A DNA stretch of 64,000 bases from IMGVR_UViG_3300042289_000986:147588-211587; one strand, 5' to 3'; positions 6,664 through 64,000 are shown, numbered from the stretch's first letter. Made by a program: numbers and translations. The notes: generated from the letters alone by a model not told the origin.

Positions 6664-7061
6664 TATGTTGTTTCCATTACCATTATTTTAGTTGCATTTC
6701 CTAAATCAAATGTTATCGAACTCATAATTTTTTCTACTTTTTCCAAGTATTCAACTATGAGTTTTAATTCTTCTATATCTTCATCAATTTTTCTAATTGG
6801 TTCTGATGATTCTACTTTTAAATTTAAAGATGCTTTTGGAATTCCACTTGGTATTCCGTTTTTTTCTAAACTTTTTAAAACTTGCTCTTTTAAATCTTTT
6901 CTTTTACTTTCTAAATGATTTTTTTGTCTTTTATGATCAATAAGTCTAGACACCCATTTATGTTTTAAAGCGGGTAGCATAAGTTGCTTTTCTAAAATAT
7001 TAATTTGATCGAATTTAGTATCTTCAGCAATTTCTTCTTTGTATTTGTTGAATATATCCAT
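6663..7061 (-). CDS. uvsY: Recombination mediator UvsY-like
   Basis: Helical ~132-aa protein, EDTKFD...LPALKHKW pattern, adjacent to uvsW; start moved to ATG 7061. Confidence 0.65.
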   Translation of the reverse strand: MDIFNKYKEEIAEDTKFDQINILEKQLMLPALKHKWVSRLIDHKRQKNHLESKRKDLKEQVLKSLEKNGIPSGIPKASLNLKVESSEPIRKIDEDIEELKLIVEYLEKVEKIMSSITFDLGNATKIMVMETT

Positions 7062-7087
7062 AAATATAGATACTACGATTATACACA

Positions 7088-7345
7088 ATGTTTAACAAAT
7101 TTCAACAATTAGTTAGTGGATTATTAAAAGAAATGAATGTTTCTGGTGCTGGTGGATCTTTTGGAGCACCTGAAGCTGGATTTGAAATTAGTAATCCAAC
7201 GTCTTTAAATCCAGACAAAGGTTATACCGATAATATCAAAGCAGCCATGTCTACTGCTCAACCAAATAAAAAATCAAAAAAGAAAAAACAACCTAAAGGT
7301 GTTTTATATACAACAAGAAGAACTCTTAATAAAAAAGATTTATAA
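7088..7345 (+). CDS. Small hypothetical protein, possible internal head protein
   Basis: MFNKFQQLVSGLLKE N-terminus, basic C-terminus; TAAATA at 7061-7066. Confidence 0.55.
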   Translation: MFNKFQQLVSGLLKEMNVSGAGGSFGAPEAGFEISNPTSLNPDKGYTDNIKAAMSTAQPNKKSKKKKQPKGVLYTTRRTLNKKDL

Positions 7346-7785: not shown

Positions 7786-7788
7786 GTT

Positions 7789-8809: not shown

Positions 8810-8834
8810 CAAAAGATATCCAAGTGGATAAAAT
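8806..8834 (+). promoter_or_regulatory. Sigma70-type promoter
   Basis: TTGACA (8806-8811), 17-bp spacer, TAAAAT (8829-8834). Confidence 0.6.
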
Positions 8835-8948
8835 AGAATGTCGTCTTTAAGTTTTCTTCTTTATTTAAAATATAATAAAGTAAAAGGTATTTAATTTATA
8901 TTTAAAATTATTCATAGGTTTTTTAAAAACATGTGTAAATATTAATAT

Positions 8949-9233: not shown

Positions 9234-9235
9234 TT

Positions 9236-9760: not shown

Positions 9761-9763
9761 ACT

Positions 9764-10937: not shown

Positions 10938-11014
10938 TATTTTGATTATCAACAACTTACAAAATTAACATTTATGTTTTTGTAAGTCTTTAATTTTGAA
11001 CAATTTATAAAAAA

Positions 11015-11257: not shown

Positions 11258-11265
11258 TATAAATA
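11258..11265 (+). promoter_or_regulatory. T4-type late promoter
   Basis: Exact TATAAATA, 5 nt before ATG 11271. Confidence 0.7.
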
Positions 11266-11270
11266 AACAT

Positions 11271-11642: not shown

Positions 11643-11681
11643 AAATTTGATTTATTCTAATATACTAGTAATATAGTATAC

Positions 11682-11975
11682 ATGAATAACGTAAGTTTTA
11701 ATTTAAAGTCTTTAACCAAAGAAGAAGTATCAACAATTTTAGAATCTTTATTGTTCAGTTCTTCTGTTGATGTTTGTGCTAGTTGGTATAAAGAAGATTC
11801 TTTAAACATGTTTAATTTAGCAAAAAAAATTCGAAATATTTTTCCAGAAATTTTAATTGATAATGTTTATATTATCGAAGATAAACAAAACAATTTTGAA
11901 CTTAATGATAAACATACGAAAAAAATTGTAGAATTTTTTCCTGAAATCAAAAAAGAAAAAATAGAAAATTTATGA
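11682..11975 (+). CDS. Hypothetical protein
   Basis: 97-aa ORF, ATGA-coupled to the next gene. Confidence 0.55.
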   Translation: MNNVSFNLKSLTKEEVSTILESLLFSSSVDVCASWYKEDSLNMFNLAKKIRNIFPEILIDNVYIIEDKQNNFELNDKHTKKIVEFFPEIKKEKIENL

Positions 11976-12616: not shown

Positions 12617-12618
12617 TC

Positions 12619-12647
12619 TTGATATTTTTAAATTTATGGGTTAAGAT
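12619..12647 (+). promoter_or_regulatory. Sigma70-like promoter of the primase gene
   Basis: TTGATA, 17 bp, TAAGAT; 8 nt before ATG 12656. Confidence 0.4.
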
Positions 12648-12655
12648 TGGGAATA

Positions 12656-14214: not shown

Positions 14215-14243
14215 GTGTATGTATGATATATTTACTCTTATCT

Positions 14244-15292: not shown

Positions 15293-15298
15293 ACTTAT

Positions 15299-15679: not shown

Positions 15680-15681
15680 TA

Positions 15682-16062
15682 ATGAAAGTTAGTTGGGGCG
15701 ATTTAAGAAAACTTTGTTTAAAAAATGTTGTTGAATTAAAGTTTGTTCGTCGCAACAAATTAAGATATCCAGCAACTAGAAGAATGCTTTGCACTTTAGA
15801 TACGGTTCTTTTAAATTCTGATTTTGGAAAAGAAACATTAAATTTTAAACCTCCTAGATATGCTCCACCATATGATGCAAAGTCAAAAAGTTTATTAACA
15901 GTTTGGGATATCATCATGCAAGATTGGAGAAATGTTCCAGTTGATGCTTGTGAAATGGTAGTAGCAGTCCCTACATCACCACAAAATAAATTTTTAGAAT
16001 TTTTCGATAAAAAAATAGGAAAAATGTCTGCCTTACAAAAGAAATCCTTTATGGACAAATAA
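15682..16062 (+). CDS. Conserved phage protein, WYL_2/DUF2693-like SH3 barrel
   Basis: VVELKFVRR...RRMLCTLD...VWDIIMQDWRNV. Confidence 0.55.
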   Translation: MKVSWGDLRKLCLKNVVELKFVRRNKLRYPATRRMLCTLDTVLLNSDFGKETLNFKPPRYAPPYDAKSKSLLTVWDIIMQDWRNVPVDACEMVVAVPTSPQNKFLEFFDKKIGKMSALQKKSFMDK

Positions 16063-16063
16063 T

Positions 16064-16667: not shown

Positions 16668-16695
16668 TACTTGTAACCGCGCATAAGTAATTTCA

Positions 16696-17574
16696 ATGAA
16701 AAATTACACCTTTGCGTGGGAAATTCAAACTTTATTAGAGCAGTTTGTTTCGGCTTTTAATGATGTAATCATTAAAAGATATGATAAAAACAAAAATGCT
16801 ATCGCTCCAACGAGCGGTTTTAAAGTTAGATATATTTATGCACCAAAACAAAGGGTAATAAATAGTCTAACAACACCCGCACCGGGTGGAATTACTGCAC
16901 CTGTCATTGCTGTTAATATAACAAGTATTTCAAGAGACAATAGTCGCGTGTTTAACAAACATGAAGGGTTTGATGTTGCTTATGTACCCAACGATGGAAG
17001 CGGAACATACGTAAAAAATATACACCAGCCAGTTCCAATTAATATTAGCGTCAATATGACAATATTGACAAAATATCAATCGGATATGGATCAAATTTTA
17101 ACTAATTTTATTCCATATTGTGATCCTTATGTTATTATTTCTTGGAAATTACCAGCAGTATCTAAATCGTCTATTCCATATGAAATAAGATCAGAAATTT
17201 TATGGAGCGGAAATGTTAATTTAAACTATCCAACTGATATATCTCCAACTCAAGCCTTTCGTCTAACAGCAGATACAAGTTTTACAATTAAAGGTTGGCT
17301 GTTTAAAAAGATGGATGAAACTATCAATAAAATTTACACAATACAATCTGATTATTACGATGGAAGGTTATTGGTACAAGATCCTGCAAAATCTCTCATA
17401 CAAAGTTTTGAAGATGTTTTCGGTCCTTGGGAAAATTACCCAGGTACAGAACTTCCACCAGAAGAAATATCTGAACTTCCTCCATTAATTGATGATAATA
17501 TCTCAAATGCATTAATAGCATTCGACGGAGCAATATTAGTTGATATTGAAGGGAACATTTTGATAAATATATAA
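16696..17574 (+). CDS. gp15: Tail sheath stabiliser/tail completion protein (T4 gp15-like) with C-terminal extension
   Basis: FVSAFNDV, YAPKQR, PVPINISVNMTILTKYQSDMDQILTNFIPY, FTIKGWLF. Confidence 0.82.
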   Translation: MKNYTFAWEIQTLLEQFVSAFNDVIIKRYDKNKNAIAPTSGFKVRYIYAPKQRVINSLTTPAPGGITAPVIAVNITSISRDNSRVFNKHEGFDVAYVPNDGSGTYVKNIHQPVPINISVNMTILTKYQSDMDQILTNFIPYCDPYVIISWKLPAVSKSSIPYEIRSEILWSGNVNLNYPTDISPTQAFRLTADTSFTIKGWLFKKMDETINKIYTIQSDYYDGRLLVQDPAKSLIQSFEDVFGPWENYPGTELPPEEISELPPLIDDNISNALIAFDGAILVDIEGNILINI

Positions 17575-17580: not shown

Positions 17581-19470
17581 ATGGCACAAAGGAATTTTAC
17601 ACAATTTAGTCCAAGAACTTTTCCTTTAACTGGTGATTATGTCGTTGGTTATAAAAATGATGGTTCAGAAGAAATGCGAACAACCCTTCAGAACATTATT
17701 GATTTAGTTTATAACTCAGAACCAAGAAACTCAAGTGGATTTAGTATTGTTAAAGCCAATTCTTCATTTTGGGCTTATAATGGAACAGATTTAAAACAAC
17801 TTTCTGGTAATTGGCAAAGTACATTCAACACAGTATGCTCTTTATCTACTCTTTGGGATGCACAAGCAGAATTTATTGACTTAACTAATTTTGTAAGCTC
17901 TAATTCTGCTAATTGGGAATATCAAGGAACAGATATTAAAGCCTTAACGGCAAATTGGCAATCAACTTATATCTCAGTTCAAAATAATGGAGGAACCACT
18001 TGGGCTTATAATGGAACAGATGTTAAACAATTAACAGGTAATTGGCAAACAACATATTCAATTGTTAGCAGTAATTCTGCTTTATGGAACTTGGGTGGTT
18101 TCGGTTCTGGAGCAACAGGCGCAACTGGCGCAACAGGTGTCGGAGTAACTGGTGCTACTGGAACACAGGGTCCAATTGGTTCTATCGGACCAACGGGCGC
18201 AGCAGGACCATCTACTTCATATTATGAATTTAAAGCAGATGTTAATGCAACAAATACACCACCAAATGCTGGTACTATTAGATGGAATAATTTAACACAG
18301 TTAAGTGCAACACAAATTCATACAAGTCATTTAACTGATACCTTTCTTGATGTTGATATATTTTTAGCCTTACTTAAAGAAAATGATACATTAATTATTC
18401 AAGATAGAAATAATTCTGCAAATTATCAAAGATGGAGAGTTAATGCAGCACCAATTGTAGCTGATAATAGTTTTATTACATTTCCAGTTACTTTAATAAA
18501 TTCAACAACAACATTTACTAGTAATCAATCTTTAATTTTAGCAGTAGTATCAGCAGGTATAGCTGGACCTACTGGTCCAACTGGACCAACTGGAGCAGGA
18601 CAAACTGGAGCCACAGGACCAACAGGAGCTACTGGTTCAAATTTTAATTATACATCAATTACATTAAATAGAACACTTTCATCGAATGCTGGTTATATTT
18701 TTGATACAACAAGTAGTCCATTAACTGCAACATTACCTTTAAGTCCCGCAATTGGTGATTTTATTAATATAACAGCAACGATTCAACCAGGAAATCTATT
18801 AACTATCGATAGAAATGGTAGTAATATAAATTCTTCTGCTAGTGCTTTAGGTGTTGATATATCAAGTAATTTTTCTTTGGTTTACACAACATCATCTATT
18901 GGATGGAGGTTTATTCCATATTCAGGATTAACAAACCCAACTATTAAAATTTATAAAGCTGTTTGGAATACTCTTCTTACAAATTTAACTGGTACTAGTA
19001 GAATACCATTTACAACAACAGTTGTTAATACAGATCCAGAAATATTTGGTGGAATTACGAATCCTGGCATTTTAGGAGCACAATACATTACCATCAAAAA
19101 AACTGGTTATTATATGATTAATTCTAACCTTCACTTGTATGATTTACAAAACGGTTTGCAATTAATGGTTTCACTTTGGAAAAATGAACCTTCTACTGGA
19201 TACGCAACACCAGTAAAAGTCCAATCAATCGTAGATTTTCAAAGTGGAACAGTTTCACAAGACCAAATTTTATTTGGTAATGCGTTGTTAAACGTAACTC
19301 AAGATGATACTAGAATTTGGTTACAAGTTGAACACAATGGAACAAGTTTAGTTCCACCGATACCTAATGGTGGACCATTCCCATCTCTTAGAGACGTTTT
19401 AGTTGATCCTGCTCCACCAAACCAAACAACTTCAACACCACCAGATATTATCATAACAAAATTAGCATAA
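17581..19470 (+). CDS. Mosaic fibre protein (W-x-Y-x-GTD repeats, collagen segments, gp9/10-like domain, C1q/BclA-like tip)
   Basis: Three WAYNGTDLKQLSGNWQST-type repeats, G-X-T triplets, TLPLSPAIGDFI...LTIDRNG...GW module, KKTGYYMI. Confidence 0.7.
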   Translation: MAQRNFTQFSPRTFPLTGDYVVGYKNDGSEEMRTTLQNIIDLVYNSEPRNSSGFSIVKANSSFWAYNGTDLKQLSGNWQSTFNTVCSLSTLWDAQAEFIDLTNFVSSNSANWEYQGTDIKALTANWQSTYISVQNNGGTTWAYNGTDVKQLTGNWQTTYSIVSSNSALWNLGGFGSGATGATGATGVGVTGATGTQGPIGSIGPTGAAGPSTSYYEFKADVNATNTPPNAGTIRWNNLTQLSATQIHTSHLTDTFLDVDIFLALLKENDTLIIQDRNNSANYQRWRVNAAPIVADNSFITFPVTLINSTTTFTSNQSLILAVVSAGIAGPTGPTGPTGAGQTGATGPTGATGSNFNYTSITLNRTLSSNAGYIFDTTSSPLTATLPLSPAIGDFINITATIQPGNLLTIDRNGSNINSSASALGVDISSNFSLVYTTSSIGWRFIPYSGLTNPTIKIYKAVWNTLLTNLTGTSRIPFTTTVVNTDPEIFGGITNPGILGAQYITIKKTGYYMINSNLHLYDLQNGLQLMVSLWKNEPSTGYATPVKVQSIVDFQSGTVSQDQILFGNALLNVTQDDTRIWLQVEHNGTSLVPPIPNGGPFPSLRDVLVDPAPPNQTTSTPPDIIITKLA

Positions 19471-19479
19471 ATAAAAAAT

Positions 19480-20583
19480 ATGATTACACTTTCAAATTTA
19501 TATCCAATACAAAACATAGGTTTTACTGGACCTACTGGTGGAATCGGACCAACAGGTGCTCAAGGAAACACTGGTAACATTGGGCCAACTGGATCGCAAG
19601 GAAACACTGGTTTAATTGGTCCAACAGGTGCTCAAGGAAATACTGGTTTAATTGGTCCAACAGGTGCTCAAGGAAATACTGGTTTAATTGGACCAACAGG
19701 AACACAAGGAAATACTGGTATAGTAGGACCAACAGGAACACAAGGAAATACTGGCTTAACAGGACCAACTGGTGCAGGAAATACAGGATCAACAGGACCA
19801 ACTGGTATTCAAGGAAACACAGGTGAAACTGGTCCAACGGGTGCTCAAGGAAATACTGGTCCAACTGGTATTCAAGGAAACACAGGTATAATGGGTCCAA
19901 CTGGATCGCAAGGAAACACAGGAGCAACTGGAGCAGGAACAACAGGACCAACTGGTGCAACTGGCACAACATTTGATTATGTATCAATAGAAACAAATAA
20001 TACGCTTTTAAGTTCTAACGAAGGTTTTATTTTTAATACATACACATCACCAATCACCGCAACACTTCCATTAAATCCATTAACTGGTGCATTTATTAAT
20101 ATTACATTTGAAAAATACAGTTCAAATAATTTAACAATTGAAAGAAATGGAAGTAATATCGATGGTGTTGCTGAAGATTTAATTTGTGATGTATCAGGAA
20201 ACTTTTCTTTAATTTATACAAATATTGTAGTTGGTTGGAAATTTATTCCATATTCAGGATTAACATTTGCACCAGCAACTCTAACATTAGATACAGTTAC
20301 TACAAGTAGATCTTTTGAATTAACAGATAGTAGTGAATTTATCACTGCTAATTCTAATAATGCAATTACATTAACTATTCCAGATGATAATTCTGTTAAT
20401 TTTACCAACGGAACACAAATTAGTATACTTCGTTTAAATACAGGAACAGTTGCATTATCTGCTGCAAACGGAGTAACATTAAGAAGTGCAGAAAATAAAC
20501 GCAGCATAAGAGCACAAAATTCTGTTGCTACTGTTGTTAAATTATCTGCCAATGATTGGAGTCTTTTTGGAGATATATCATAA
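19480..20583 (+). CDS. Collagen-like fibre protein
   Basis: Long G-X-Y run (GPT/GAQ/GNT) followed by a domain paralogous to the one in 17581..19470. Confidence 0.75.
19525..19965 (+). repeat. Collagen-coding tandem repeats (36-bp [12 protein letters not shown] units)
   Basis: Near-identical ggtccaacaggtgctcaaggaaatactggtttaatt units. Confidence 0.85.
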
Positions 20584-21287
20584 TGAGAGTATTTTCGGGA
20601 TCTTTAGCAGGATCAAACTCTTTAATAGGTGAAGATCGCGCCATTAATTACGGAGGTTCTTTCGCTGGTGCATCTAATTTTGGCTATGGTTTTGATGCTT
20701 GGGATTTTACATCAACAGGTAATGCGGGTGCGTTTATTGGACCTTCGTTTGGTGGTTTAATAGATACAAACGGTTCTTCTTTTGGATTATATGGTAATGG
20801 AGCAGGAAGTAATTTTATTGATGTAAGAAGAAACCTTCCTGCAAATTTATCGGTAGGATATGCATTATCCGCAGCAATATCTGTCAATTTTAGAAATGGA
20901 AATAAAGGATTTAGTGTTTACCATAATAACACTTGGGATCCCAACCAAGAAGTCTTTAACTTTAATGTAGGATCCAATGATTATATTATTAATGGAGTAG
21001 GAACTGGACAGGCATATTCTTCAACAATGGTTGCAAAGATTGTTTTGAAAAAAACTAATTTAAATTCTTATAGTTATTCTGTTACATTGGGAACAACGAC
21101 ATATACTGCAAATGATATAACACGTAACGGTTATAGTAATATTAGAGGTTTTAAATTTTATATTTCAAATACTGAAGGAGCACCAAATAACGATTTATAT
21201 TTTAACAGTATAAAAGTTTATAAAATAGACGAACCTATCAGTACAATACCAACATCAACATTTACAACTTTTGTGTCTTATGAATAA
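20583..21287 (+). CDS. Putative virion beta-sandwich (lectin-like) protein
   Basis: G/S/N/F-rich beta-type sequence ending NNDLYFNSIKV; start moved to ATG 20583. Confidence 0.5.
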   Translation: MRVFSGSLAGSNSLIGEDRAINYGGSFAGASNFGYGFDAWDFTSTGNAGAFIGPSFGGLIDTNGSSFGLYGNGAGSNFIDVRRNLPANLSVGYALSAAISVNFRNGNKGFSVYHNNTWDPNQEVFNFNVGSNDYIINGVGTGQAYSSTMVAKIVLKKTNLNSYSYSVTLGTTTYTANDITRNGYSNIRGFKFYISNTEGAPNNDLYFNSIKVYKIDEPISTIPTSTFTTFVSYE

Positions 21288-22503
21288 CATTAAAGATATA
21301 GAAAAATTAACACAAAAGCTTTTAGCAGAAACTCCAGAATATGTTCATTCGGTTGGTTATGGTTTTAAAGAAGTTGATGGAAAATTAACAGACGAATTTT
21401 CTATAGTTTTTGGTGTTACAGAAAAAAAACCATTATCATCTATTCCACAAAATGAAATTTTACCATCAACAATAACAACAGAAGATGGTAGTATTTTTAC
21501 TACTGATGTTATTCAAATACCACAAGCTGTTGCATACCCATCTTGCTATGAAATTAGTAATTCAGTTGAACCCGTTTCATTACATAGATCATCTCGAACA
21601 ACATATATCGGTGGAACAAGAATATCAATAGATAATCCATTAAATTTAGGAAACAGTGCATTTACAGGAACTATGGGACTTATCTGTAAAGATCTCACCG
21701 ACAATACTCTTGTTGCATTAACAAATGCACACGTTGCTGCTTATACAGAAAGAGACGCATCTTTATTGTCTTCAAGTTTTAGCAATAGACAAACAACAGT
21801 ATACCAAGCTTTCCCTTGGTCAAATCAATCTACAATGAAATTAAAAAGGTATGTTCCGCTTTTAGCAAGTGGAAACACAATTGATGCAGCAGTTGTAGCC
21901 ATAACAAATTCAAGTAGAGTAAACACACTTACATCTTTTAAACAATTAAATTTAAATTATGGAAATCTTGAATTTGCCACTACCTCTGAAATTGATAATT
22001 TGGTCATAAATAAAAATCCAATTTTTAAATCAGGTGCAACAACTGGTCCTGTTGGATGGCCAGGTTCTATACCTTGGGGTTCTGAATCGTGTTCTCTTAC
22101 TGCTACCCAAGTCGGAGTTTCTGTAGGTGTTAATTTTAGTGGAAATATTTTAAATTTTACATCATGTTTAACTTATAGAGGAACATTTACTGTTGCTAGT
22201 AGTGGTGGAGATTCGGGTAGTGCTGTTTGTGCATTAATAAACCCCGAAAGTCAATCTTTAAGCGCATGGAAAGTGGTTGGTTTAACTTTTGCTGGTTCAG
22301 ATTTAGGAGATAATAGTCCATCGTATGCATGTCGCATCGATAATATTTGTTCTACTTTACAATTAACAGCATGGGATGGTCAAACCACCGCTTTAACAAA
22401 TTTGGGAAATGAAAGAGTTAAATATGTAGAAGGAAAATCATCAGAACCGTTTGTTATAGAAAATGGAAAAAGATATTGGCAGACAGGATTAACCGTTATT
22501 TAA
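21280..22503 (+). CDS. Trypsin-like (S1, Nal1-like) serine protease
   Basis: Catalytic triad motifs LTNAHVA, IDAAVV, GGDSGS; KSGATTG; VGLTFAG. Confidence 0.8.
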   Translation: MNNIKDIEKLTQKLLAETPEYVHSVGYGFKEVDGKLTDEFSIVFGVTEKKPLSSIPQNEILPSTITTEDGSIFTTDVIQIPQAVAYPSCYEISNSVEPVSLHRSSRTTYIGGTRISIDNPLNLGNSAFTGTMGLICKDLTDNTLVALTNAHVAAYTERDASLLSSSFSNRQTTVYQAFPWSNQSTMKLKRYVPLLASGNTIDAAVVAITNSSRVNTLTSFKQLNLNYGNLEFATTSEIDNLVINKNPIFKSGATTGPVGWPGSIPWGSESCSLTATQVGVSVGVNFSGNILNFTSCLTYRGTFTVASSGGDSGSAVCALINPESQSLSAWKVVGLTFAGSDLGDNSPSYACRIDNICSTLQLTAWDGQTTALTNLGNERVKYVEGKSSEPFVIENGKRYWQTGLTVI

Positions 22504-22505
22504 TT

Positions 22506-22844
22506 ATGAAAAACGTAGAAATATATGATCAATATGCAAATGTTTATTTGAATAATCAAACTAATGAATTAGTTGTATTAAATTTAAATTATAATGAAGA
22601 ATTAGATACAAGTTTATATACTTTGGTTCATTCTAGTTCTGGTTTTGTTATATCAAAAGGTGAAAATTTAAACACGGAAAGTGCATTAAGTTTAGTCGAA
22701 GAACTTTATGTAGAATCCCAAAATTTAGGAGAAAATTATCAAGAAAAAAATATAAATTTAGAAAATGGCTACGTGGAAATGATTATATCTTTCAATGACG
22801 GTAAAAAACTTAATAGAGTTATCTATATTAAGGATAATTTATAA
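22506..22844 (+). CDS. Hypothetical acidic protein
   Basis: ORF directly after the protease; start moved to ATG 22506. Confidence 0.5.
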   Translation: MKNVEIYDQYANVYLNNQTNELVVLNLNYNEELDTSLYTLVHSSSGFVISKGENLNTESALSLVEELYVESQNLGENYQEKNINLENGYVEMIISFNDGKKLNRVIYIKDNL

Positions 22845-22868
22845 TGTAAAGTGATAAATATTTAGAAT

Positions 22869-24320
22869 ATGGCTTTATTATCTGAAAAATATCCAATTAC
22901 TCAGTCTACAGGACCAACAGGTTCAACAGGAGCAACTGGTGCTGGCCAAACTGGTGCTACTGGAAACACTGGTATAGTAGGACCAACTGGAGCACAAGGA
23001 AATACTGGTGATATTGGACCAACAGGCTCTCAAGGAAACACAGGTATAGTAGGCCCAACTGGAGCACAAGGAAATACTGGTGATATTGGACCAACAGGCT
23101 CTCAAGGAAACACAGGTATAGTAGGCCCAACTGGAGCACAAGGAAATACTGGCCAAACAGGTTCGCAAGGAAACACTGGCGCAACTGGTAATGATGGATC
23201 AACTGGTCCTACAGGTTCAGGAAACACAGGAGCAACAGGTCAAACTGGAGCACAAGGAAATACAGGTGATATCGGTCCAACTGGAGCACAAGGAAATACA
23301 GGCCAAACTGGTGCTCAAGGAAATACAGGCATAGTGGGTCCAACTGGAACACAAGGAAATACAGGTGCAACAGGATCCACTGGTTTAGCAGGAGACAAAT
23401 ATACTACAACATCAACTACTAATACAAACATAGCCACAGGGTCAAAAACATTCACTGTTGATAGTGGTCTTGCTTATAGTATAGGACAATCTGTAATAGT
23501 TTCTTTTGATTCTTCTAATAAAATGGAAGGATCTGTTACAAGTTATTCTGGTACAACATTGATTGTAGATGTAACAACAATTACAGGTTCTGGAACATAT
23601 AATAGTTGGAGCGTAAGCTTGTCTGGAGCACCTGGACCCGCTGGTTTAACAGGCGCAACGGGAGCCACTGGTACTAATGGTACGAATGGAACAACTGGAG
23701 CAACAGGTGCTACTGGTACGGATGGAACAACAGGCGCAACGGGAGCCACTGGTACTAATGGTACGAATGGAACAACTGGAGCAACAGGTGCTACTGGTAC
23801 GGATGGAACAACAGGCGCAACAGGTGCTACTGGTACGAATGGAACAAACGGATCAACTGGATCAACTGGAACAACAGGAACTACTGGTGATTCCGCTTGG
23901 AAAATATTTGATATGAGTTTTGATTACGGTGAATATGATGTAAATAACGTTGTTACAAATGCAATTATTAGCAATGCTATAGTCACAATTCCATCTTGTG
24001 TCTTAATGGATAATACCAGCAATACTCATGCAAGCGCAAACGTAAACATAAGACTTGTAATCTTACAAGAGTATGGAGGAATTACAAACATGACATATGA
24101 TATACTTGCATATTCTGGAGGAAGTCCAACTGTTTATACTCCAACACTAACACAATTTACAACAAATGGACCCAATAATGCTGCTACAGAGCATGTTATT
24201 GGTAACTGGTTTACCCATAACATATCTGCACAAGGTACAACATTTCAACTAAGAGCATCTCGAAACGCTAATGGTTTTACAAGAATTAAAAAAGTTTATT
24301 TACAAGTTAGGAAAAACTGA
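22869..24320 (+). CDS. Collagen-like fibre protein
   Basis: Two G-X-T-rich collagen runs separated by a beta domain ([17 protein letters not shown]...[10 protein letters not shown]). Confidence 0.75.
22905..23890 (+). repeat. Collagen-coding repeats including 63-bp and 81-bp direct duplications
   Basis: [21 protein letters not shown] units at about 22970-23150; 81-bp unit at 23649 and 23730. Confidence 0.8.
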
Positions 24321-24332: not shown

Positions 24333-24548
24333 ATGGCATATTTTGATACAGAATTAAATGAAGCATGGGCATGGTTTGCGGTAAACTGGGAATTGTGGAT
24401 AAATTTAAATACATCACTAACTGATGGTTTAAAATTTGTGTTTGATAATACTGGTGGACCATCTGGACCGCATAAAGAAACACATTGGCAGTGGGTTAGA
24501 AATAATAGAGAAGAATTATTAAATTTATACAATTCTTTAAAGAACTAA
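24333..24548 (+). CDS. Small Trp-rich hypothetical protein
   Basis: 71-aa ORF following a fibre gene. Confidence 0.5.
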   Translation: MAYFDTELNEAWAWFAVNWELWINLNTSLTDGLKFVFDNTGGPSGPHKETHWQWVRNNREELLNLYNSLKN

Positions 24549-25646
24549 TTTTTCTTTAAAAAAATTTATATTTTGTTGAATTCTTGGTTTTTGGTCTTCA
24601 GGTATTTTGTGAATTAATTCTTCACAGATCCTTAAACCTTCTTCATAATGTCCTGTCCAATAACAAGAGACAGAAAATTCATCATCTAAACCATAATCCC
24701 ATATCCAACTTTCAACAAACAAACCTGTTTTATCAATCTTTAATGTTTTAGCATATCTACCAAGAATATAAGCTTGATGATCTCTTTGATGCATTCTACA
24801 AAAACGAATAGCACCATGCAATGCTTCAATTCTTGATGTGCATTTTTCATATGCTCGAAGATAACTTTGTACAATATCATCTTCAGGATATCCCATGATT
24901 TCTTTTAATCGAGCTATTTGATATAAAGACCAATAAACTTCTTGATCCCAACCTCCCAACTCTGCTCTTTTATTGTACCAATATATTGCCTTTCCTTTTT
25001 GTTCACAATCTTTGTATGATTGAGCAAGATAAAAAGTATATCTTGGAATTAAATGCGGGTCTTTTTCTGTTTTTAATGCATCTTCTAAGACTTTAGCATC
25101 TTTTTGATACTTTTCATTATCACTATTTCTCGCAGAATCTTGTATAGGTACATTATATATTCCTTTTGCAGTATCCCTGCTTAAAATTGGCTCTGCACAC
25201 TCAAGATATTCGTGTAAAATGCTTTTATAAAAATATTTTTTAGAATTTTTAAATAAATTTGTTCTTGCATATTCAATATTTGCATATTTGCATGTTATAT
25301 AATATAAATCTGCTGTTAAATTGTTTTTAAAATCGTTTACATTAAAGTTTTCATCAAATTTTAATATTTCATCAGCATCAATTGTTAAAACATAATCAAT
25401 ATCAGCATGTTTTCGAAGGTTTTCTAATGACTTAGTTCTGTTAAATGAAAAGTTTTCCCATTTTTCTTCATTTACTTCTCCATCAACGTTGTTATTTTTT
25501 AACCAATCTTTAATAATTTGAATTGTATTGTCTGTTGAACCAGTATCCGATATACAAACATAATCGATTAGTGGTTTTACACTATCTAAACATCGCTGAA
25601 TCACTTTAGATTCATTTTTAACTATCATACACAAACCTATCTTCAT
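24537..25646 (-). CDS. GT2 glycosyltransferase with TPR repeats
   Basis: IGLCMIVKNE, DTGSTDNT, NFSFNR, IDADE, LHEY, followed by TPR helices (RYTFYLAQSYKD...AIYWY). Confidence 0.88.
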   Translation of the reverse strand: MKIGLCMIVKNESKVIQRCLDSVKPLIDYVCISDTGSTDNTIQIIKDWLKNNNVDGEVNEEKWENFSFNRTKSLENLRKHADIDYVLTIDADEILKFDENFNVNDFKNNLTADLYYITCKYANIEYARTNLFKNSKKYFYKSILHEYLECAEPILSRDTAKGIYNVPIQDSARNSDNEKYQKDAKVLEDALKTEKDPHLIPRYTFYLAQSYKDCEQKGKAIYWYNKRAELGGWDQEVYWSLYQIARLKEIMGYPEDDIVQSYLRAYEKCTSRIEALHGAIRFCRMHQRDHQAYILGRYAKTLKIDKTGLFVESWIWDYGLDDEFSVSCYWTGHYEEGLRICEELIHKIPEDQKPRIQQNINFFKEKLVL

Positions 25647-26539: not shown

Positions 26540-26569
26540 TTATATAGTATATTTTAATATAAATAAAAA

Positions 26570-27472
26570 TCAATAAGGACTATTGGATACTCTTGTAATA
26601 AGCATATATGGTTGAGTACCAAAATTATTATTAAATACTGGATACCCTTGATTACCGTTTCCGCCGTTTGCACCGCCATGTAAAACTGTTACCGCATAAA
26701 AAGTTTGTGGTGATAAAAGTACACTAATAGAACCTCTTTGAGAAGATTCTCCATTTCCTGTTGTATCCGTAAATCCTTGCGCTATATTTCCAATTAAAGT
26801 TGCAAGATTTACGTTTGATGTATTAATAAATTGATTGTTTTGATATAAACGAAGTCTCATAAAATCTGTTGGATCTGTCATATCATACGAAGCATATCTT
26901 ATTTCAATATTATATAAACCACCTTCAGTAACAGTAAAATTTGTATGTGTTCCAGTGTTGTTTCCAGTTTCTAAAACAGGAGATATATAAAACGTCAGAG
27001 GAGTATTAAAAGAAATTACATTTTCTAAATTATACAACCATCGATTCCATCGAATAACGTTTTCAATTCCATTTGTTGTGTTTGATAATCCATTATTTAA
27101 ATTTATATCAAATCTTAAATAACAAGGATTAACTGAACCAGAAGGACCAGTTGGTCCAGTTGGTCCTATTGGCCCTCCTGATGGACCAGTTGGTCCAGTT
27201 GGTCCTATTGGCCCTCCTGATGGACCAGTTGGACCTGTAACCCCTGTTGGTCCTGTGTTTCCAAAACCTGTAGCTCCAGTTGGTCCCGTTGGTCCAGTTA
27301 CTCCTGTATTTCCAGAACCCGTAGCTCCAGTTGGACCAGTTGATCCTGTGTTTCCTGTAGCACCAATTGCACCCAAATTTGGGATATCAGAAGTTTCTAT
27401 TACATTAATAGAACGAACCGTAGCATCTTTGGGTTCTATATGCTTTCCATAAATGTTAAATTCCAATGCCAT
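26570..27472 (-). CDS. Short collagen-like protein with C1q/BclA-like C-terminal domain
   Basis: GPT repeats, then [15 protein letters not shown]...PYMLITRVS. Confidence 0.7.
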
Positions 27473-28381: not shown

Positions 28382-28420
28382 AATATTATTTATTCGTTTT
28401 TTTCATTTTTAAAGAACAAA

Positions 28421-37255: not shown

Positions 37256-37289
37256 ATTCTATACTTATGATTTTAAACTGTATATTTGA

Positions 37290-39158: not shown

Positions 39159-39234
39159 GATTATATTATATTTAGTCTGACTTATAAGTAATCAATGTTT
39201 TTTGTTTATTAAAGAATAAGTATTCAAAATTAGC

Positions 39235-40334: not shown

Positions 40335-40408
40335 TGTTAATATTACTTATTAAAGATCTATTTGTTTTTATTTAAAGAAATAAATAAGTATAGTCTAAGT
40401 ATATTTGA

Positions 40409-41732: not shown

Positions 41733-41764
41733 ATAAAGTAAGTGTAAGTAATAATTAAAGATAT

Positions 41765-42436: not shown

Positions 42437-42464
42437 ATGTAATTTAAAAAGATAAATATATAAT

Positions 42465-43588: not shown

Positions 43589-43626
43589 TTTCTTTTTAAT
43601 TCGTATTCTATCCATAGGAGAACAAT

Positions 43627-45084
43627 ATGAAAAACGTTAATCCAGCCACAGGCTACATTGACCGTTCTCGCGCTCAACAGCTTGTTGAGAAATGGGCACC
43701 AGTACTTGATTACACATCCGATAAGGTTGCGCCAATCGAAGACGAACATGCTCGTTTAACAACAGCTATTTTGATGGAAAACCAAGAAAGATGGTGCATC
43801 GAAGAAGGATCTGGTGGTAACTCAGCAGGACCTCTCGGAGCATTCGGCACAGGTGCAGGAACAACCTCACTCTACGCCCCTCCAGGAACGGTTACATCAG
43901 GAGATAGATATGCAACAGGAGATGCTCGCTTACCTAAGATTCTTATCCCAATGGTTCGCCGTACCTTCCCAGAGCTTATCACAAACGAGATCGTCGGTGT
44001 TCAGCCAATGAGTGGTCCAGTCGGATTGGCCTTCGCATTGCGTTATCGCTATGAAGCAGACAGTCTTGGTGCTAATGGCATCGACGGCTATGCTACAGGG
44101 TCAACCGATAAGGGACCAGGTGGTGTAGATCGTGGTGTATCAGACCAAGCAGAACTCGGATACAACTTCCTCGACACTCGTTTCACAGGAACAAGCTCAT
44201 CATTCTTAAGCGGAAACACTGATTTCAGTCTTATCCAATCAGATCGTGGTGTAGCAGCAATCTTGAAAGATTTCGAATTAACAGGAAACATTCCTCAAGT
44301 CACAGTAGAATTCAGCAAAACAGCCGTCGAAGCTGGCACACGCCGCCTCGCCGCTCGCTGGAGTGTTGAACTCGAACAAGACCTTAAGAACATGAACGGA
44401 CTCGATATCGATTCTGAATTAACAAACGCTATGTCGTATGAAATTCAGGCCGAAATCGACCGCGAAATGGTCATGAGAATGGTTCAAGTCTGTCTCAACG
44501 CTAACCAAGGAAACGGATACAGCTTCTGGTACGCAGCTTCAGCCGATGCACGTTGGCTCGGAGAGCGTAACCGCGACTTCTACAGTAAAGTGATTGTTGA
44601 GGCTAACCGCATCGCAATCCGCAACCGTAGAGGAAGTGCAAACTTCATCATTGCCACACCTCGCGTGTGTGCAATTCTTGAAATGTTGCCAGAGTTTCAA
44701 TGGATGCCAGTGAATGGCAACATCAATACGCAACCAACAGGCATTGCCAAAGTTGGTACGCTTGGTGGAAGATTCACTGTCTACCGTGACACTCGCACAG
44801 ATGCTCAGTATCTCGCAGGTCAAAGACAAACCGCACTGGAATATGCTCTGTTAGGTTACAAAGGAACTGAATACTATGACACAGGTATCGTATACTGCCC
44901 TTACATCCCAGTTATGATCCAACGCACTGTCGGTCCTAATGACTTCGCTCCTCGCGTAGGTCTTATGACACGTTATGGTGTTGTTGATCATATCTTTGGT
45001 GCTAATCTTTATTACCACCTTATCATCGTATCAGGTCTTGGAACAGCCAATGTCGCTCAAGACAATGGCCGTCTCTATCTGTAA
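43627..45084 (+). CDS. gp23: Major capsid protein (T4 gp23)
   Basis: EKWAPVL, TAILMENQE, IVGVQPMSGPVGLAFALR, WSVELEQDLK, EIQAEIDRE, YCPYIP, TRYG; SD AGGAG upstream. Confidence 0.98.
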   Translation: MKNVNPATGYIDRSRAQQLVEKWAPVLDYTSDKVAPIEDEHARLTTAILMENQERWCIEEGSGGNSAGPLGAFGTGAGTTSLYAPPGTVTSGDRYATGDARLPKILIPMVRRTFPELITNEIVGVQPMSGPVGLAFALRYRYEADSLGANGIDGYATGSTDKGPGGVDRGVSDQAELGYNFLDTRFTGTSSSFLSGNTDFSLIQSDRGVAAILKDFELTGNIPQVTVEFSKTAVEAGTRRLAARWSVELEQDLKNMNGLDIDSELTNAMSYEIQAEIDREMVMRMVQVCLNANQGNGYSFWYAASADARWLGERNRDFYSKVIVEANRIAIRNRRGSANFIIATPRVCAILEMLPEFQWMPVNGNINTQPTGIAKVGTLGGRFTVYRDTRTDAQYLAGQRQTALEYALLGYKGTEYYDTGIVYCPYIPVMIQRTVGPNDFAPRVGLMTRYGVVDHIFGANLYYHLIIVSGLGTANVAQDNGRLYL

Positions 45085-45483: not shown

Positions 45484-45499
45484 CAATACTTATTTAAAA

Positions 45500-45988: not shown

Positions 45989-46088
45989 TGTGAATATATA
46001 CTTACTTTCATACTAACAAGATAAAATACAAAATCAACTTTTTAGTATTGTCTTGATGTTTGTGGTTTTTGTGATAGAATTCATAATA

Positions 46089-47544: not shown

Positions 47545-47620
47545 GGTTTATAATATTTACTTCAAAATAAGCCCAAAACCATAAAAGATTTAACAGATTT
47601 TGAACATAAGTATTTATGCC

Positions 47621-48127
47621 GTGGCAAAAGTAGATTTAAATAACTTAATTAGACCAAAACAACAAAACAATCCTTCTACAGTATTGTCTAAAAAAGTAGA
47701 AGTAGTTGGTTCGGTTTATACAGATTTACATTTAGACTTACAATTTAGTAAAAGCATAGGATTAGGAAATTCACCAGCAAATTCTAACGATATTATGGTC
47801 GATACCGATGAAGAAGCAATCAAAAATTCTATTAGAAACATTTTTTCAATTAGAAAGGGTGATAAACTTTTAAATCCTGATTTTGGTTCTTCTTTGGAAC
47901 AATATCTTTTTGAACCAGTTTCTGAAGTATATGCCAGAGCAATTGCAGACGATATACTGAATACTTTAGAGACATATGAACCTAGAATCGAAGTAACAAA
48001 AGTTACAATTGTTCCTAAACATGATGATAATCAATATGAAACATATGTAAAATATAGATTTTTAGAAATAAAAAAAGAAAGTATTTTAAGTATTATTGCC
48101 AAAAGAGGAGGAGAAATCTTAATATAA
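47621..48127 (+). CDS. gp25: Baseplate wedge subunit (T4 gp25-like)
   Basis: DEEAIKNSIRNIF..RKGD...PDFGS.L..YLFEP, YEPRI; GTG start 8 nt after TAAGTA. Confidence 0.88.
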   Translation: MAKVDLNNLIRPKQQNNPSTVLSKKVEVVGSVYTDLHLDLQFSKSIGLGNSPANSNDIMVDTDEEAIKNSIRNIFSIRKGDKLLNPDFGSSLEQYLFEPVSEVYARAIADDILNTLETYEPRIEVTKVTIVPKHDDNQYETYVKYRFLEIKKESILSIIAKRGGEILI

Positions 48128-53993: not shown

Positions 53994-54028
53994 AACTAGG
54001 TTTTTTAATCTAAATATATAAGATAAAC

Positions 54029-60637: not shown

Positions 60638-60681
60638 ATAGCTTTGATTAATAAAACTTATAGATAAATATTTAACAACAA

Positions 60682-61092
60682 ATGAATAGGTTTCATTCTA
60701 AATTTCATAGAAAAAATCATCACACAAACACAGATCCTTATAATCCAGACGCAGGACATGACCCTATAGCAAGTCCAGATGCTCCTTTTCAAGGTATTTT
60801 CTGTGTTAATGGTAATTTGAGTTCAAGTGGAGGTTTGACTGTTAGCGGATTTAATATTTCGAGGGGTTATAGAACAGTGGGATTTACTACCCTTGTAGCA
60901 GGTTCTTCCGCTTTGGTAACCACAACAGCAATTCAAGCTAGTTCGATTGTTCTGTTAACCCCACAAACTTCATCTGTAAATATTGGAACACCATTTATCA
61001 GAACAAGAATACCATCAGTTAGCTTTACAATATCATCTACACATGCAAATGATAGAAGTACGATTGGTTGGTTTATCTTACAAACACAATAA
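60682..61092 (+). CDS. Small structural protein with His-rich N-terminus
   Basis: MNRFHSKFHRKNHHT...; C-terminal beta domain ending IGWFILQ. Confidence 0.6.
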   Translation: MNRFHSKFHRKNHHTNTDPYNPDAGHDPIASPDAPFQGIFCVNGNLSSSGGLTVSGFNISRGYRTVGFTTLVAGSSALVTTTAIQASSIVLLTPQTSSVNIGTPFIRTRIPSVSFTISSTHANDRSTIGWFILQTQ

Positions 61093-61105
61093 ATATTAAA
61101 AGATC

Positions 61106-64000
61106 ATGGCAGAGATTAGAACAAAATTAATAACACAATTGCCATTAGGAATTTTTTTGGATGGTGAAGAAATTCTCCCAATGCAACAACAAGGAGTTAC
61201 AAGAAAACTCCAAACAAAAGACATCATTCTTTATACCAAAAAACAAGATTATGCTACTTGGGTAAATCAAGCATCAACTAATCTCCTCACAATAGATCTT
61301 TCTTCGCGTTTTATAAGATTATACAACCAACAACCAAATGACAATTTAAATCCTGAATTTTTTATTGGTGAATTTGACACTTTAACAAATACTACAGAAT
61401 TAACTAGTTTAACAGGATATACTTTTTATTATAACGAGTCATCAAATAATTTTGTATTCACGGCTCACACATCAAGTTCAAATCATTCAAGGGTTTTAAC
61501 TGCATATTATATTGATCAAAATGCTATTACATATATTAATAATCTTTCAACATCTAATGTTTTAAGTGCTAAACAGATATTTGTTACAGATTCAATAACT
61601 ATTTCTGCAAATACAAATTCTGATGGTTTGTATATTGTTCAAAACGGAACTGGTAATGCAGTAGAAGTTTTTGATGAAATCAATGACACAACACCATTTG
61701 TAATCAACAGTTTAGGAAATGTTGGAATTAAAACGTCAAATCCTCTAATTGACCTGACGATCAATGGTAATTTAAGTTCAAATTCAAATTTAAGTGCCAG
61801 AAATGTACACGTAACCAATTCGGTTATAGTTTCAGCTAACACAAATTCTAGTGGCCTATATGTTGTTCAAAACGGAACTGGTAATGCAGTAGAAGTTTTT
61901 GATGAAATCAATGACACAACACCATTTGTAATCAACAGTTTAGGAAATGTTGGAATTAAAACCACAAACCCTCTGGTTGATCTAACAATTAATGGTAATT
62001 TAAGTTCCAATTCAAATTTAAGTGCCAGAAATGTATTTGTTACAGATTCAATAACTATTTCTGCAAATACAAATTCTGATGGTTTGTATATTGTTCAAAA
62101 CGGAACTGGTAATGCAGTAGAAGTTTTTGATGAAATCAATGACACAACACCATTTGTTATTAATAATATAGGAAATATTGGAATTAAAACTTCAAATCCT
62201 CTAATTGACCTGACGATCAATGGTAATTTAAGTTCAAATTCAAATTTAAGTGCAACCAATATACATCTTTTAAACTCTCTCGGTATTAATGTTAATAATC
62301 CAATGGAAAGATTAACCTTATTAGGTAATCTTTCCACAAACGGTAATATTATAGGAACTAATAATTTACATTTATCAGGTGTAATGACTATACCGGGTGG
62401 CGCGGGTGGAGATAGTCGTAACTGGGTTTCTAACTTTAACAACGTGTGCGCTTTATCTGCAAGATGGGAGAGCATTTATAGCTATTGGAACCCATTAACA
62501 GCAAATACAGCACAAGTCGTATCTCATGTTAATGCAAATTCTGCAAACTGGAATTCGACATTTTCAACATGGAATGCTACAAGTGCCTTTGAACTTTCTG
62601 CAAGAAATTTTATAAATCAAAATAATAGAAATATTGTTAGCAATTATAGTCATTATAATGCTAATAGTGGTTTATTTGCAACATATGCATATGCCAATGG
62701 GTTTTTACCTATTTCTGGGGGAGCCGTAACTGGAAACGTAACCTTATGTGCAAATTTAATTGTGGTTGGTGCTTTAACGGCACAAAAATTTACCGTTCTG
62801 GAAACTCAAACTCTTCCAACCACGGCAAGTCAATTAACAGTTTCATTAGATGGAAACATTGGAACATCATTAACTGTTAATCAAGACGTTTTAGTTGGAA
62901 GAAATATGTTTCTTTCCGGTTACTTTTTAGTTCCAGGTGGCGCGGGTGGAGATAGTCGTAACTGGGTTTCTAACTTTAACAACGTGTGCGCTTTATCTGC
63001 AAGATGGGAGAGCATTTATAGCTATTGGAACCCATTAACAGCAAATACAGCACATTCAACAACTTATGTAAACAATACAAGTTCAACAATTAATAGCGTC
63101 AATTCTTATGTTAATACTAATCGTATTAATTTAAGTGAAGTGGCAACAACTGTAAATTCAAATAGTTCTATTTGGATATTTAATGGTGGAAATACGGGTG
63201 CGGTTACAGTAGGAACAAACAACAATACAAATCTTTCTCTTGAAACCAACAATATAACAAGAATGACGGTGTTGAGCGGTGGAAATATCGGTATCAACCA
63301 ATTAACTCCAACCAGCAGACTCCATGTGACGGACAATTCTTCAAACCCCACAGTTCTTATTACACAAGCTGGTGCTGGTGAAGGATTAAGAATTACACAA
63401 TTAGGAACGGGATATGCTTTATTGGTAGAAGATGTTGTATCAGACACAACACCATTTGTCATTGATGCTGACGGAAATATTGGTGTGAGCACTGCTTCAC
63501 CAACAAATAAAATAACTATTTTAAGTAATTCTAATAATATTAACGATTATCCAATTAGAATTAATAATAATTCAAACAATTATGCATCCGGTATTGGCGC
63601 ATATGGCATATCAAACAGAATTGGCACATCCACAAATATTGATTATACTTTAGACATAGGAAACGACATTTTCTTTAAAAATAATAATTCAAATACAGTT
63701 GTTATTAAATCTGGTGGAAATGTGGGTATATCTACAACAACACCAAATGAAAGATTAACAGTTTTTGGAAATGTTAGTGCAAATGGAATAATTTACGATT
63801 CGACAAGTAGTTCAACCGATTGGAACATATCTTTCAACAGAAGTACATTTTTAACAACAGCAAGTAGTGATTGGAACACATCTTTCAACAGAAGTACAAT
63901 CTTGGCAGCAGCAAGTAGTGATTGGAACACATCTTTCAACAGAAGTACAATCTTGGCAGCAGCAAGTAGTGATTGGAACACATCTTTCAACAGAAGTACA
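61106..64000 (+). CDS. Partial long tail-fibre protein (runs off the window end)
   Basis: Not in the ORF track (no stop in window). Manual translation: MAEIRTKLITQLP...; repeated GNVGIxTxxP beta-fibre motifs and N/S/W repeats. Confidence 0.8.
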   Translation, partial: MAEIRTKLITQLPLGIFLDGEEILPMQQQGVTRKLQTKDIILYTKKQDYATWVNQASTNLLTIDLSSRFIRLYNQQPNDNLNPEFFIGEFDTLTNTTELTSLTGYTFYYNESSNNFVFTAHTSSSNHSRVLTAYYIDQNAITYINNLSTSNVLSAKQIFVTDSITISANTNSDGLYIVQNGTGNAVEVFDEINDTTPFVINSLGNVGIKTSNPLIDLTINGNLSSNSNLSARNVHVTNSVIVSANTNSSGLYVVQNGTGNAVEVFDEINDTTPFVINSLGNVGIKTTNPLVDLTINGNLSSNSNLSARNVFVTDSITISANTNSDGLYIVQNGTGNAVEVFDEINDTTPFVINNIGNIGIKTSNPLIDLTINGNLSSNSNLSATNIHLLNSLGINVNNPMERLTLLGNLSTNGNIIGTNNLHLSGVMTIPGGAGGDSRNWVSNFNNVCALSARWESIYSYWNPLTANTAQVVSHVNANSANWNSTFSTWNATSAFELSARNFINQNNRNIVSNYSHYNANSGLFATYAYANGFLPISGGAVTGNVTLCANLIVVGALTAQKFTVLETQTLPTTASQLTVSLDGNIGTSLTVNQDVLVGRNMFLSGYFLVPGGAGGDSRNWVSNFNNVCALSARWESIYSYWNPLTANTAHSTTYVNNTSSTINSVNSYVNTNRINLSEVATTVNSNSSIWIFNGGNTGAVTVGTNNNTNLSLETNNITRMTVLSGGNIGINQLTPTSRLHVTDNSSNPTVLITQAGAGEGLRITQLGTGYALLVEDVVSDTTPFVIDADGNIGVSTASPTNKITILSNSNNINDYPIRINNNSNNYASGIGAYGISNRIGTSTNIDYTLDIGNDIFFKNNNSNTVVIKSGGNVGISTTTPNERLTVFGNVSANGIIYDSTSSSTDWNISFNRSTFLTTASSDWNTSFNRSTILAAASSDWNTSFNRSTILAAASSDWNTSFNRST
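61580..62255 (+). repeat. Three 228-bp (76-aa) tandem coding repeats
   Basis: caaaacggaactggtaatgcagtag recurs at 61640, 61868 and 62096. Confidence 0.9.
62396..63054 (+). repeat. Identical 119-bp direct repeat pair (62396-62514 and 62936-63054)
   Basis: No mismatch seen by eye; 540 bp apart, in frame. Confidence 0.9.
63809..64000 (+). repeat. 51-bp (17-aa) tandem coding repeat ASSDWNTSFNRSTILAA
   Basis: Units start at 63860, 63911 and 63962, with a degenerate copy upstream. Confidence 0.9.

Follow-up and report, generated by a model that had tools for sequence, protein, structure and literature searches.

Why do so many genes of an uncultured T4-like phage begin directly behind the same hexamer, and what kind of mRNA would such an arrangement produce? 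The DNA stretch IMGVR_UViG_3300042289_000986:147588-211587 (hereafter the window, 64,000 nucleotides long and located at the end of a 211,587-bp contig) carries TAA(A/G)TA (TAARTA) immediately before start codons on both strands. A preliminary description of the window proposed that TAARTA is a late promoter read by the phage gp55 sigma factor, that most late genes have their own copy and that late mRNAs have leaders of about 0-8 nucleotides (nt). Our analysis of the complete genome and its relatives leads to a modified answer. The RNA polymerase bound by gp55 probably starts transcription at or just before the late AUG codons, so that late mRNAs would be translated in a leaderless or nearly leaderless manner and downstream cistrons through coupling. 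Early genes share the same placement of the promoter against the ATG, a general feature that the preliminary description did not recognize.

The contig ends in an exact 143-bp terminal repeat and therefore represents a circular genome, with an assembly of 211,444 bp and a GC content of 32%. A simple codon-bias caller yielded 213 genes; this gene set is crude and includes some miscalled starts, and the caller misses small genes (83% coding compared with a probable value above 90%). Exhaustive hexamer statistics over positions -30 to -1 of the called genes rank TAAGTA first (23 observed versus 0.8 expected; Poisson tail, 1e-25) and TAAATA second (49 versus 4.0; Poisson tail, 1e-35), and positional enrichment is thus present. 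Of the genomic copies, 14.6% of TAAATA and 33% of TAAGTA are located 0-14 nt before a called start, compared with 1-5% of unrelated permutations of the same composition; permutations that represent 1-2-nt shifted readings of the same sites reach up to 7-11%. The preference does not depend on gene calling. When only an ATG located 5-9 nt downstream and opening an open reading frame (ORF) of at least 30 amino acids (aa) is required, the proportions are 30% for TAAGTA and 11% for TAAATA, versus 1-5% for unrelated hexamers and up to 10% for one-base shifts of the motif. Moreover, both hexamers are depleted genome-wide on both strands (observed/expected ratio of 0.66-0.68 in an order-4 Markov model), whereas other TAA-containing hexamers exhibit no such depletion in this model.

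The extended consensus of the motif is aTAA(A/G)TAt, with A at 44 sites and G at 21 sites at position -8. No upstream position of the motif-bearing genes contains information that would indicate a -35 element, and TTG occurs at the right spacing in only ~8 of the 65 sites. TAACTA is not enriched before starts. For TAATTA, 13 of 186 copies are found there, a mild enrichment, and its overall frequency is far below expectation (observed/expected ratio of 0.56). It replaces TAAATA or TAAGTA upstream of the portal gene in some relatives (loci L023, L028, L032-L034, L036, L038, L041 and L044) and may be a third allowed variant.

Could this pattern be a chance by-product of an AT-rich genome in which TAA stop codons frequently lie just upstream of the next gene? 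The GC content of 32% and the TAA within the motif would make such an origin conceivable, but hexamers of the same composition behave otherwise, only 6 of 47 motifs provide the preceding gene with its TAA stop codon, and TAACTA is not favored. In addition, the pattern is kept across diverged relatives and is missing from T4 and from the AT-rich phage CP220 (27% GC), which served as controls. These controls refute a chance origin, whose probability we regard as negligible, and confirm that the observed pattern is real and far beyond chance.

The motif is positioned within a narrow distance of the start codon. Each of the 21 coordinates in the preliminary description, which gives minus-strand sites by their leftmost motif base, contains TAA[AG]TA as claimed. 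At 20 of these sites, a long ORF starts with an ATG located 5-14 nt beyond the motif, and only site 47607 departs from the claim, because the ATG at 47616 opens a five-codon, out-of-frame reading. The gp25-like gene at this site (window 47600-48127, +) probably starts at GTG 47621 (protein MAKVDLNNL...) and not at TTG 47600, as in the ORF list, or at ATG 47616; in its relatives, TAAGTA or TAAATA is found 9-10 nt ahead of the ATG. The sites of the window are collected in Table 1 together with the other features discussed below.

Table 1. Promoter motifs and key genes in the window. Positions are counted from the first nucleotide of the window; the gap is the number of nucleotides between the end of the motif and the start codon.
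Feature	Position	Strand	Gap (nt)	Start codon	Gene or remark
Sigma70-type, TTGTAG-N17-TATAAT	3490..3518	-	8	ATG 3481	Glycosyltransferase
gp55-like late sigma, 245 aa	4524..5261	-			T4 gp55 match, E = 3e-9; phrog_234 'late sigma transcription factor', 7e-26
Two overlapping sigma70-type candidates, TTGAAA-N16-TATAAT and TTGTTA-N17-TAGTAT	7070..7105	-	16 and 8	ATG 7061	uvsY
TAAATA	8936..8941	+	7	ATG 8949	94 aa
TAAATA	11260..11265	+	5	ATG 11271	123 aa
Sigma70-type, TTGATT-N16-TAATAT	11647..11674	+	7	ATG 11682	
Sigma70-type, TTGATA-N17-TAAGAT	12619..12647	+	8	ATG 12656	gp61-like primase
TAAATA	14229..14234	-	14	ATG 14214	199 aa
TAAGTA	16684..16689	+	6	ATG 16696	gp3-like tail sheath stabilizer
TAAATA	17564..17569	+	11	ATG 17581	629-aa tail-fiber-like protein
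TAAATA	19468..19473	+	6	ATG 19480	Collagen-repeat tail fiber
TAAATA	22855..22860	+	8	ATG 22869	483-aa collagen-repeat protein
Sigma70-type, TTGATT-N16-TATACT	26546..26573	-	6	ATG 26539	
TAAATA	28387..28392	-	5	ATG 28381	231 aa; missed by the preliminary description
TAAGTA	37262..37267	-	6	ATG 37255	129 aa, phrog_1084; kept in 9/12 relatives
Portal_T4 (gp20)	37290-39158	-			
TAAATA	39169..39174	-	10	ATG 39158	Portal gp20
TAAGTA	39217..39222	+	12	ATG 39235	181 aa; divergent from portal promoter, 76-nt spacer
TAAGTA	40344..40349	-	9	ATG 40334	185 aa
TAAGTA	40396..40401	+	7	ATG 40409	gp13-like head-tail adaptor; kept in 24/26 relatives
TAAGTA	41745..41750	+	14	ATG 41765	gp21 prohead protease; kept in 16/18 relatives
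TAAATA	42453..42458	+	6	ATG 42465	69 aa; kept in 9/10 relatives
gp23 leader (exception)	43589..43626	+		ATG 43627	38-nt spacer; no TAARTA; GGAG 6 nt before ATG; small palindromic block CTATCCATAG
Gp23 capsid protein	43627-45084	+			
Overlapping TAAATA (45491-45496) and TAAGTA (45487-45492)	45487..45496	-	7 and 3	ATG 45483	107 aa
TAAGTA	45999..46004	-	10	ATG 45988	162 aa
TAAATA	47554..47559	-	9	ATG 47544	173 aa; kept in 6/7 relatives
TAAGTA	47607..47612	+	8	GTG 47621 (probable)	gp25-like baseplate wedge
TAAATA	54011..54016	+	12	ATG 54029	2202 aa
TAAATA	60665..60670	+	11	ATG 60682	136 aa
TAAATA	61090..61095	+	10	ATG 61106	1285-aa ORF

Across the genome, the motif ends no more than 14 nt before the ATG in 65 genes. 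The gap between the end of the motif and the ATG ranges from 5 to 14 nt and is most commonly 5 nt (10 genes) or 6 nt (18 genes). Among 484 distinct sites of the clade, gaps of 3, 4, 5, 6 and 7 nt are found 5, 11, 81, 98 and 52 times, respectively, and the counts then fall steadily up to a gap of 16 nt. The late element of T4 occupies positions -13 to -6 (PMC1524935). By this rule, a gap of 5 nt places +1 on the A of the ATG, and the floor at 5 nt, which equals the T4 distance from -6 to +1, is as expected if the ATG must be contained in the transcript, preferably as its first codon. Provided that the T4 rule applies to this phage, leaders of 0-9 nt are predicted, a range slightly wider than the one originally suggested.

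Which polymerase would recognize the motif? The genome encodes a gp55-like late sigma factor that exceeds T4 gp55 by an N-terminal extension of ~90 residues. In the alignment with T4 gp55, L54, Y97 and T99 are kept, H95 is replaced by F and R57 is replaced by A; in the T4 protein, pockets formed by Y97 and T99 hold A-12 and A-8, respectively (PMC7892883). This gp55 is the only sigma region-2-like ORF found in the genome, and a search for a further sigma factor that could recognize the G variant found none. We infer that gp55 reads both variants. A 390-aa early ORF contains a weak sigma70 region-4-like helix-turn-helix (G000:C1:66733-66801, -; E = 0.009) and has its own promoter, TTGACA-N17-TAATAT, 7 nt before its ATG; this protein could be a transcription regulator.

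The motif is associated with a particular class of genes. It precedes the orthologs of gp3, gp13, gp17, gp18, gp19, gp20, gp21 and gp25 as well as fiber genes, and it is absent before gp41, gp44, gp47, gp55, gp61, uvsY and tk. Overall, it is found before 13 of 19 late orthologs versus 1 of 14 early orthologs (Fisher p = 0.0009). The presence of a gp55 homolog, the lack of a -35 element, the association with late genes and the exchange of A and G in relatives support the view that TAA(A/G)TA forms the -10-like core of late promoters of the T4 type, in which either purine would be tolerated at position -8. Late promoters of eukaryotic viruses (poxvirus TAAAT and baculovirus TAAG) were also considered and were dropped because the genome encodes T4-type portal, gp23, gp55, gp41 and gp44 proteins.

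Consistent with this gene content, the phage is, as judged from its proteins and its source, a distant member of the T4 superfamily from lake water. The window contains genes for gp55, gp41, gp47, uvsY, gp61, gp44, gp3, gp13, gp21, gp22, gp25, gp6, an endolysin and collagen-like fibers, and the tail sheath, tail tube, large terminase and gp32 genes are located elsewhere in the genome. A megablast search for near-identical or close isolates gave no match, and the best isolate matches of the portal and capsid proteins share about 30-35% identity, with the portal at ~31% at most. Of the 23 runs listed for this DNA, 20 are lake-water metagenomes that contain it. Relatives were collected from IMG/VR as 70 loci whose portals are 43-83% identical to that of the phage.

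The motif is conserved at orthologous positions in these relatives. For genes that carry the motif in this phage, 89 of 105 orthologous upstream regions also contain it, compared with 2 of 26 for genes that lack it (p = 1e-13). The portal gene is preceded by TAARTA in 30 of 38 distinct upstream sequences and by the relaxed form TAA[AGT]T[AT] in 37 of 38. Conversely, the head-closure gene and gp23, both of which are motif-less in this phage, have the motif in 0 of 13 and 2 of 13 relatives, respectively. A and G swap at the same orthologous sites among the relatives. When 44 related loci are pooled, TAAATA (241 observed versus 19.6 expected) and TAAGTA (107 versus 4.7) are again the top two hexamers.

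Is the proximity of promoter and start codon a property of gp55? It is not, because early genes are organized in the same way with promoters of the host type. The bipartite pattern TTGNNN-N16-18-TANNNT ends 5-8 nt before the ATG in 23 of the 213 genes, compared with ~2 expected. In this genome and two nearly complete relatives (225 kb and 195 kb), the gap of these sigma70-type elements peaks sharply at exactly 6 nt, with 41 cases. In textbook promoters, -7 and +1 are separated by this distance. The consensus is canonical, TTGA(C/T)(A/T) and TA(A/T)(A/T)AT, and such bipartite elements can only be promoters. Because they occupy the same position as TAARTA, the layout is genome- and clade-wide. 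Signals of the Bacteroidota type (TTTG-N19-21-TAnnTTTG, with TTTG at -33 and TAnnTTTG at -7) are not enriched; a T precedes TTG in 9 of 26 cases, and the TTTG tail is missing. Of the two sigma70-like promoters named in the preliminary description, the one at 12619 is a complete bipartite element, whereas 46053 has only a -10-like TAGTAT and no -35 element.

The genome also makes little use of SD (Shine-Dalgarno) sequences. SD-like words occur at or below expectation genome-wide, in late and non-late genes alike, and 16 of 216 genes have an SD-like sequence, versus 138 of 235 in T4. The earlier statement that no SD sequence lies between the motif and the start codon is therefore true, but it does not distinguish these sites from the rest of the genome. 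Instead, 89 of the 213 genes are stop/start coupled to the upstream gene, most commonly with a 4-nt overlap, and none of these 89 has the late motif; 65 genes adjoin a late motif and 23 adjoin a sigma70-type promoter. The remaining 36 fit no class, and several of them represent near-miss promoters or wrongly called starts. Only about half of the late genes, and not most of them as previously proposed, have a promoter of their own, and the rest are stop/start coupled.

TAARTA might alternatively act in the mRNA as a non-SD ribosome-binding signal, perhaps read through a phage-encoded bS21 ribosomal protein, in transcripts that start farther upstream. The short and fixed distance between motif and start, the absence of SD sequences from the genome and the bS21 gene itself are compatible with such a signal. 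However, the motif corresponds to the late promoter core of the T4 family (PMC1524935) in a genome that encodes gp55, it is limited to late-gene orthologs and avoids the coupled genes, and it is depleted on both genome strands. Furthermore, bipartite sigma70 promoters take the same position before early genes, and the sharp 5-nt floor coincides with the start-site offset of T4. A divergent gene pair outside the window provides a further argument against an mRNA signal. A 130-aa ORF (G000:C1:116356, -) and the large terminase gene (116381, +) are separated by a 24-nt spacer, in which TAAATA and TAAGTA overlap as reverse complements inside TAAGTATTTA, and this spacer leaves no space for upstream promoters except inside the opposing gene. 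We therefore consider an mRNA-level signal very unlikely.

A second alternative accepts TAARTA as a late promoter and attributes its closeness to the ATG to genome compaction in an SD-independent host; long polycistronic transcripts would then supply most of the late protein, the promoters next to the ATG would contribute little, and leaderless initiation would not be the main route. Internal cistrons indeed likewise lack SD sequences, approximately half of the late genes have no motif of their own, and 13 of the 47 motifs with a preceding gene on the same strand fall inside the ORF of that gene or at its end. Compaction by itself does not readily account for the 5-nt floor or for the 6-nt spike of the sigma70 -10 elements, both of which point to selection for an ATG that is transcribed first, and divergent gene pairs have no upstream transcript. 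This alternative thus appears unlikely, although somewhat less so than an mRNA-level signal.

We propose the following mechanism for promoter-proximal initiation by gp55. The phage gp55 on the host RNA polymerase core would read TAA(A/G)TA, usually with A before and T after the hexamer, without a -35 element. Transcription would start either with the A of the ATG or up to ~9 nt before it. The late mRNAs would then be initiated by ribosomes at their 5' end in a leaderless-type manner without an SD sequence, for which there is no room between +1 and the start codon, and downstream cistrons would be read through stop/start coupling. Early genes would behave alike, using TTGACA/TATAAT-type promoters that end 6 nt before the ATG. 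Motif statistics, spacing, gene class, conservation, the presence of gp55 and the lack of SD sequences are direct results; the transcription start sites and the mode of translation initiation in this scheme are inferred.

Several observations weigh against this mechanism. Every one of the 23 listed runs is of the DNA type, with no RNA run recorded. Approximately one-third of the sites have gaps of 9-14 nt, which predict 4-9-nt leaders rather than leaderless mRNAs, and the purine preference at the predicted +1 is weak. The gene caller is biased to ATG and to long ORFs. The probable start of the gp25-like gene is GTG, and GTG starts are disfavored by classical leaderless translation. Searches with T4 queries and PF02916 gave no match to gp33 or gp45, small and fast-evolving proteins that may escape such searches; a gp44-like clamp loader is present. 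Finally, the major capsid gene lacks TAARTA and carries a conserved SD-like GGAG. Its palindromic block is conserved in relatives together with GGAG or GAAAGG, and a few relatives carry TTGATT-N17-TAAATA instead. The conserved GGAG before the capsid gene raises the possibility that the host ribosome may use SD sequences after all.

What would such a layout demand of the host? The host should have canonical sigma70 promoters, little or no SD use and ribosomes that accept messages beginning with AUG at the 5' end. The phage encodes a 71-aa bS21 homolog outside the window (G000:C1:70276-70491, +) that scores above the family cut-off of PF01165. It is also found in the 195-kb relative, in contrast to the 225-kb relative, and locus L087:14276-14491 is listed with the phage copy. 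bS21 belongs to the ribosomal platform that binds mRNA, beside the anti-SD region, and its presence may thus bear on SD-free translation. A search for the host through bS21 found no relative among species genomes, and a protein atlas returned only viral bS21 clusters. The phage also carries a one-piece, full-length tmRNA (G000:C1:65194-65653, -; Rfam RF00023, 138 bits; ARAGORN tag ADEEMLLAA) that fits neither the alpha, the beta nor the cyanobacterial two-piece type. Its one-piece form argues weakly against an alphaproteobacterial host. In addition, 20 tRNA genes are located outside the window at ~36-84 kb.

Three tandem paralogous glycosyltransferase genes (1139-3481, -) lie beside replication genes, and a fourth glycosyltransferase gene (24537-25646, -) is located among fiber genes. 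Four collagen-repeat (G-X-Y) tail-fiber-like proteins are encoded at 17581-24320 (+) and 26570-27472 (-), and three of the four genes carry a TAARTA motif of their own. The final ORF begins at ATG 61106, reaches the window end at 64000 and continues over the circular junction into the contig start, giving a total length of 1285 aa.

What is new in these findings is that late promoters of the gp55 type abut the start codon as part of a predicted leaderless layout that spans the whole genome and is shared by an abundant clade of freshwater phages. Our literature search found no report of this layout here or in the Pelagibacter phage HTVC008M, and a search for late promoters in pelagimyophages was reported as unsuccessful (PMC7029224). 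A more far-reaching proposal is possible, although we hold it to be rather doubtful in its full extent: this abundant uncultured clade of freshwater T4-like phages, and partly HTVC008M, may express nearly its whole proteome through leaderless mRNAs and coupling, with +1 of both promoter classes on the A of AUG, with bS21 and perhaps tmRNA biasing the host ribosomes, and with the SD-led capsid gene as a deliberate exception. If this is true, translational take-over would be encoded in mRNA architecture. A large environmental branch of the T4 superfamily in which both promoter classes let transcripts begin at the AUG would show that the gp55 mechanism is compatible with leaderless expression and that leaderless translation can sustain an entire lytic program outside Deinococcus-Thermus and archaea. 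The motif would also allow late operons and start codons to be annotated directly in metagenomic phages of this kind.

In the textbook system of T4 late transcription, mRNAs are described as having an SD-bearing leader. The phage resembles T4 in having a gp55-family sigma factor and a TAAATA-core, -10-like element that lacks a -35 element and precedes virion genes; in T4, gp55, gp33 and gp45 act on TATAAATA. The first T of this octamer is not conserved in the phage, and it is likewise not conserved in RB49, KVP40, S-PM2 and Aeh1 (CTAAATA) (PMC1524935). Unlike T4, the phage has A or G at -8, a gap of mostly 5-6 nt and no SD sequences; its gp33 and gp45 are undetected by sequence, and its gp55 has the N-terminal extension and the H95-to-F replacement. 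In the same pipeline, the T4 gap between late promoter and ATG is 13-35 nt, and SD hexamers head the list. The Campylobacter phage CP220, the Prochlorococcus phage P-SSM3 and C48C1 have gaps of mostly 15-40 nt with SD sequences.

Leaderless genes of Deinococcus-Thermus have a TANNNT -10 element a few base pairs before the ORF and no 5' untranslated region or ribosome-binding site (PMC12340547). The early genes of the phage are similar in that their -10 element adjoins the start with the 6-nt spike. In contrast, the layout is found here in a phage of 32% GC, involves nearly all promoter-proximal genes and includes an additional promoter class read by a phage sigma factor. In the Thermus phage phiYS40, a large myovirus, middle and late mRNAs have no leader and are still translated; the host phylum of phiYS40 is rich in leaderless genes, and the balance of IF2 and IF3 is reportedly shifted (PMC3594737). 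phiYS40 was not reported as a gp55-type system (PMC3594737), whereas the phage described here combines a T4-type late sigma with bS21 and tmRNA.

A partial counterpart, and the exception among the control phages, is HTVC008M (NC_020484), a cultured T4-like Pelagibacter phage of the Kyanoviridae, in which TAAATA also lies against the ATG of virion genes. In HTVC008M, 12 TAAATA copies are each separated by exactly 5 nt from the ATG of a long ORF; examples are the copies at 11961, 18932, 19445 and 49749 on the plus strand and those preceding the minus-strand starts at 16007 and 18916. Six sites were checked, and all six are annotated gene starts, five of them of structural genes (gp2, gp48, head closure, baseplate wedge and tape-measure-like). 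This arrangement implies that HTVC008M, too, may produce leaderless late mRNAs. HTVC008M differs from the lake-water phage in that approximately half of its genes have SD-like sequences, promoters of the sigma70 type do not adjoin the ATG and the TAAGTA variant is lacking. HTVC008M on Pelagibacter HTCC1062 offers a cultured system for this question.

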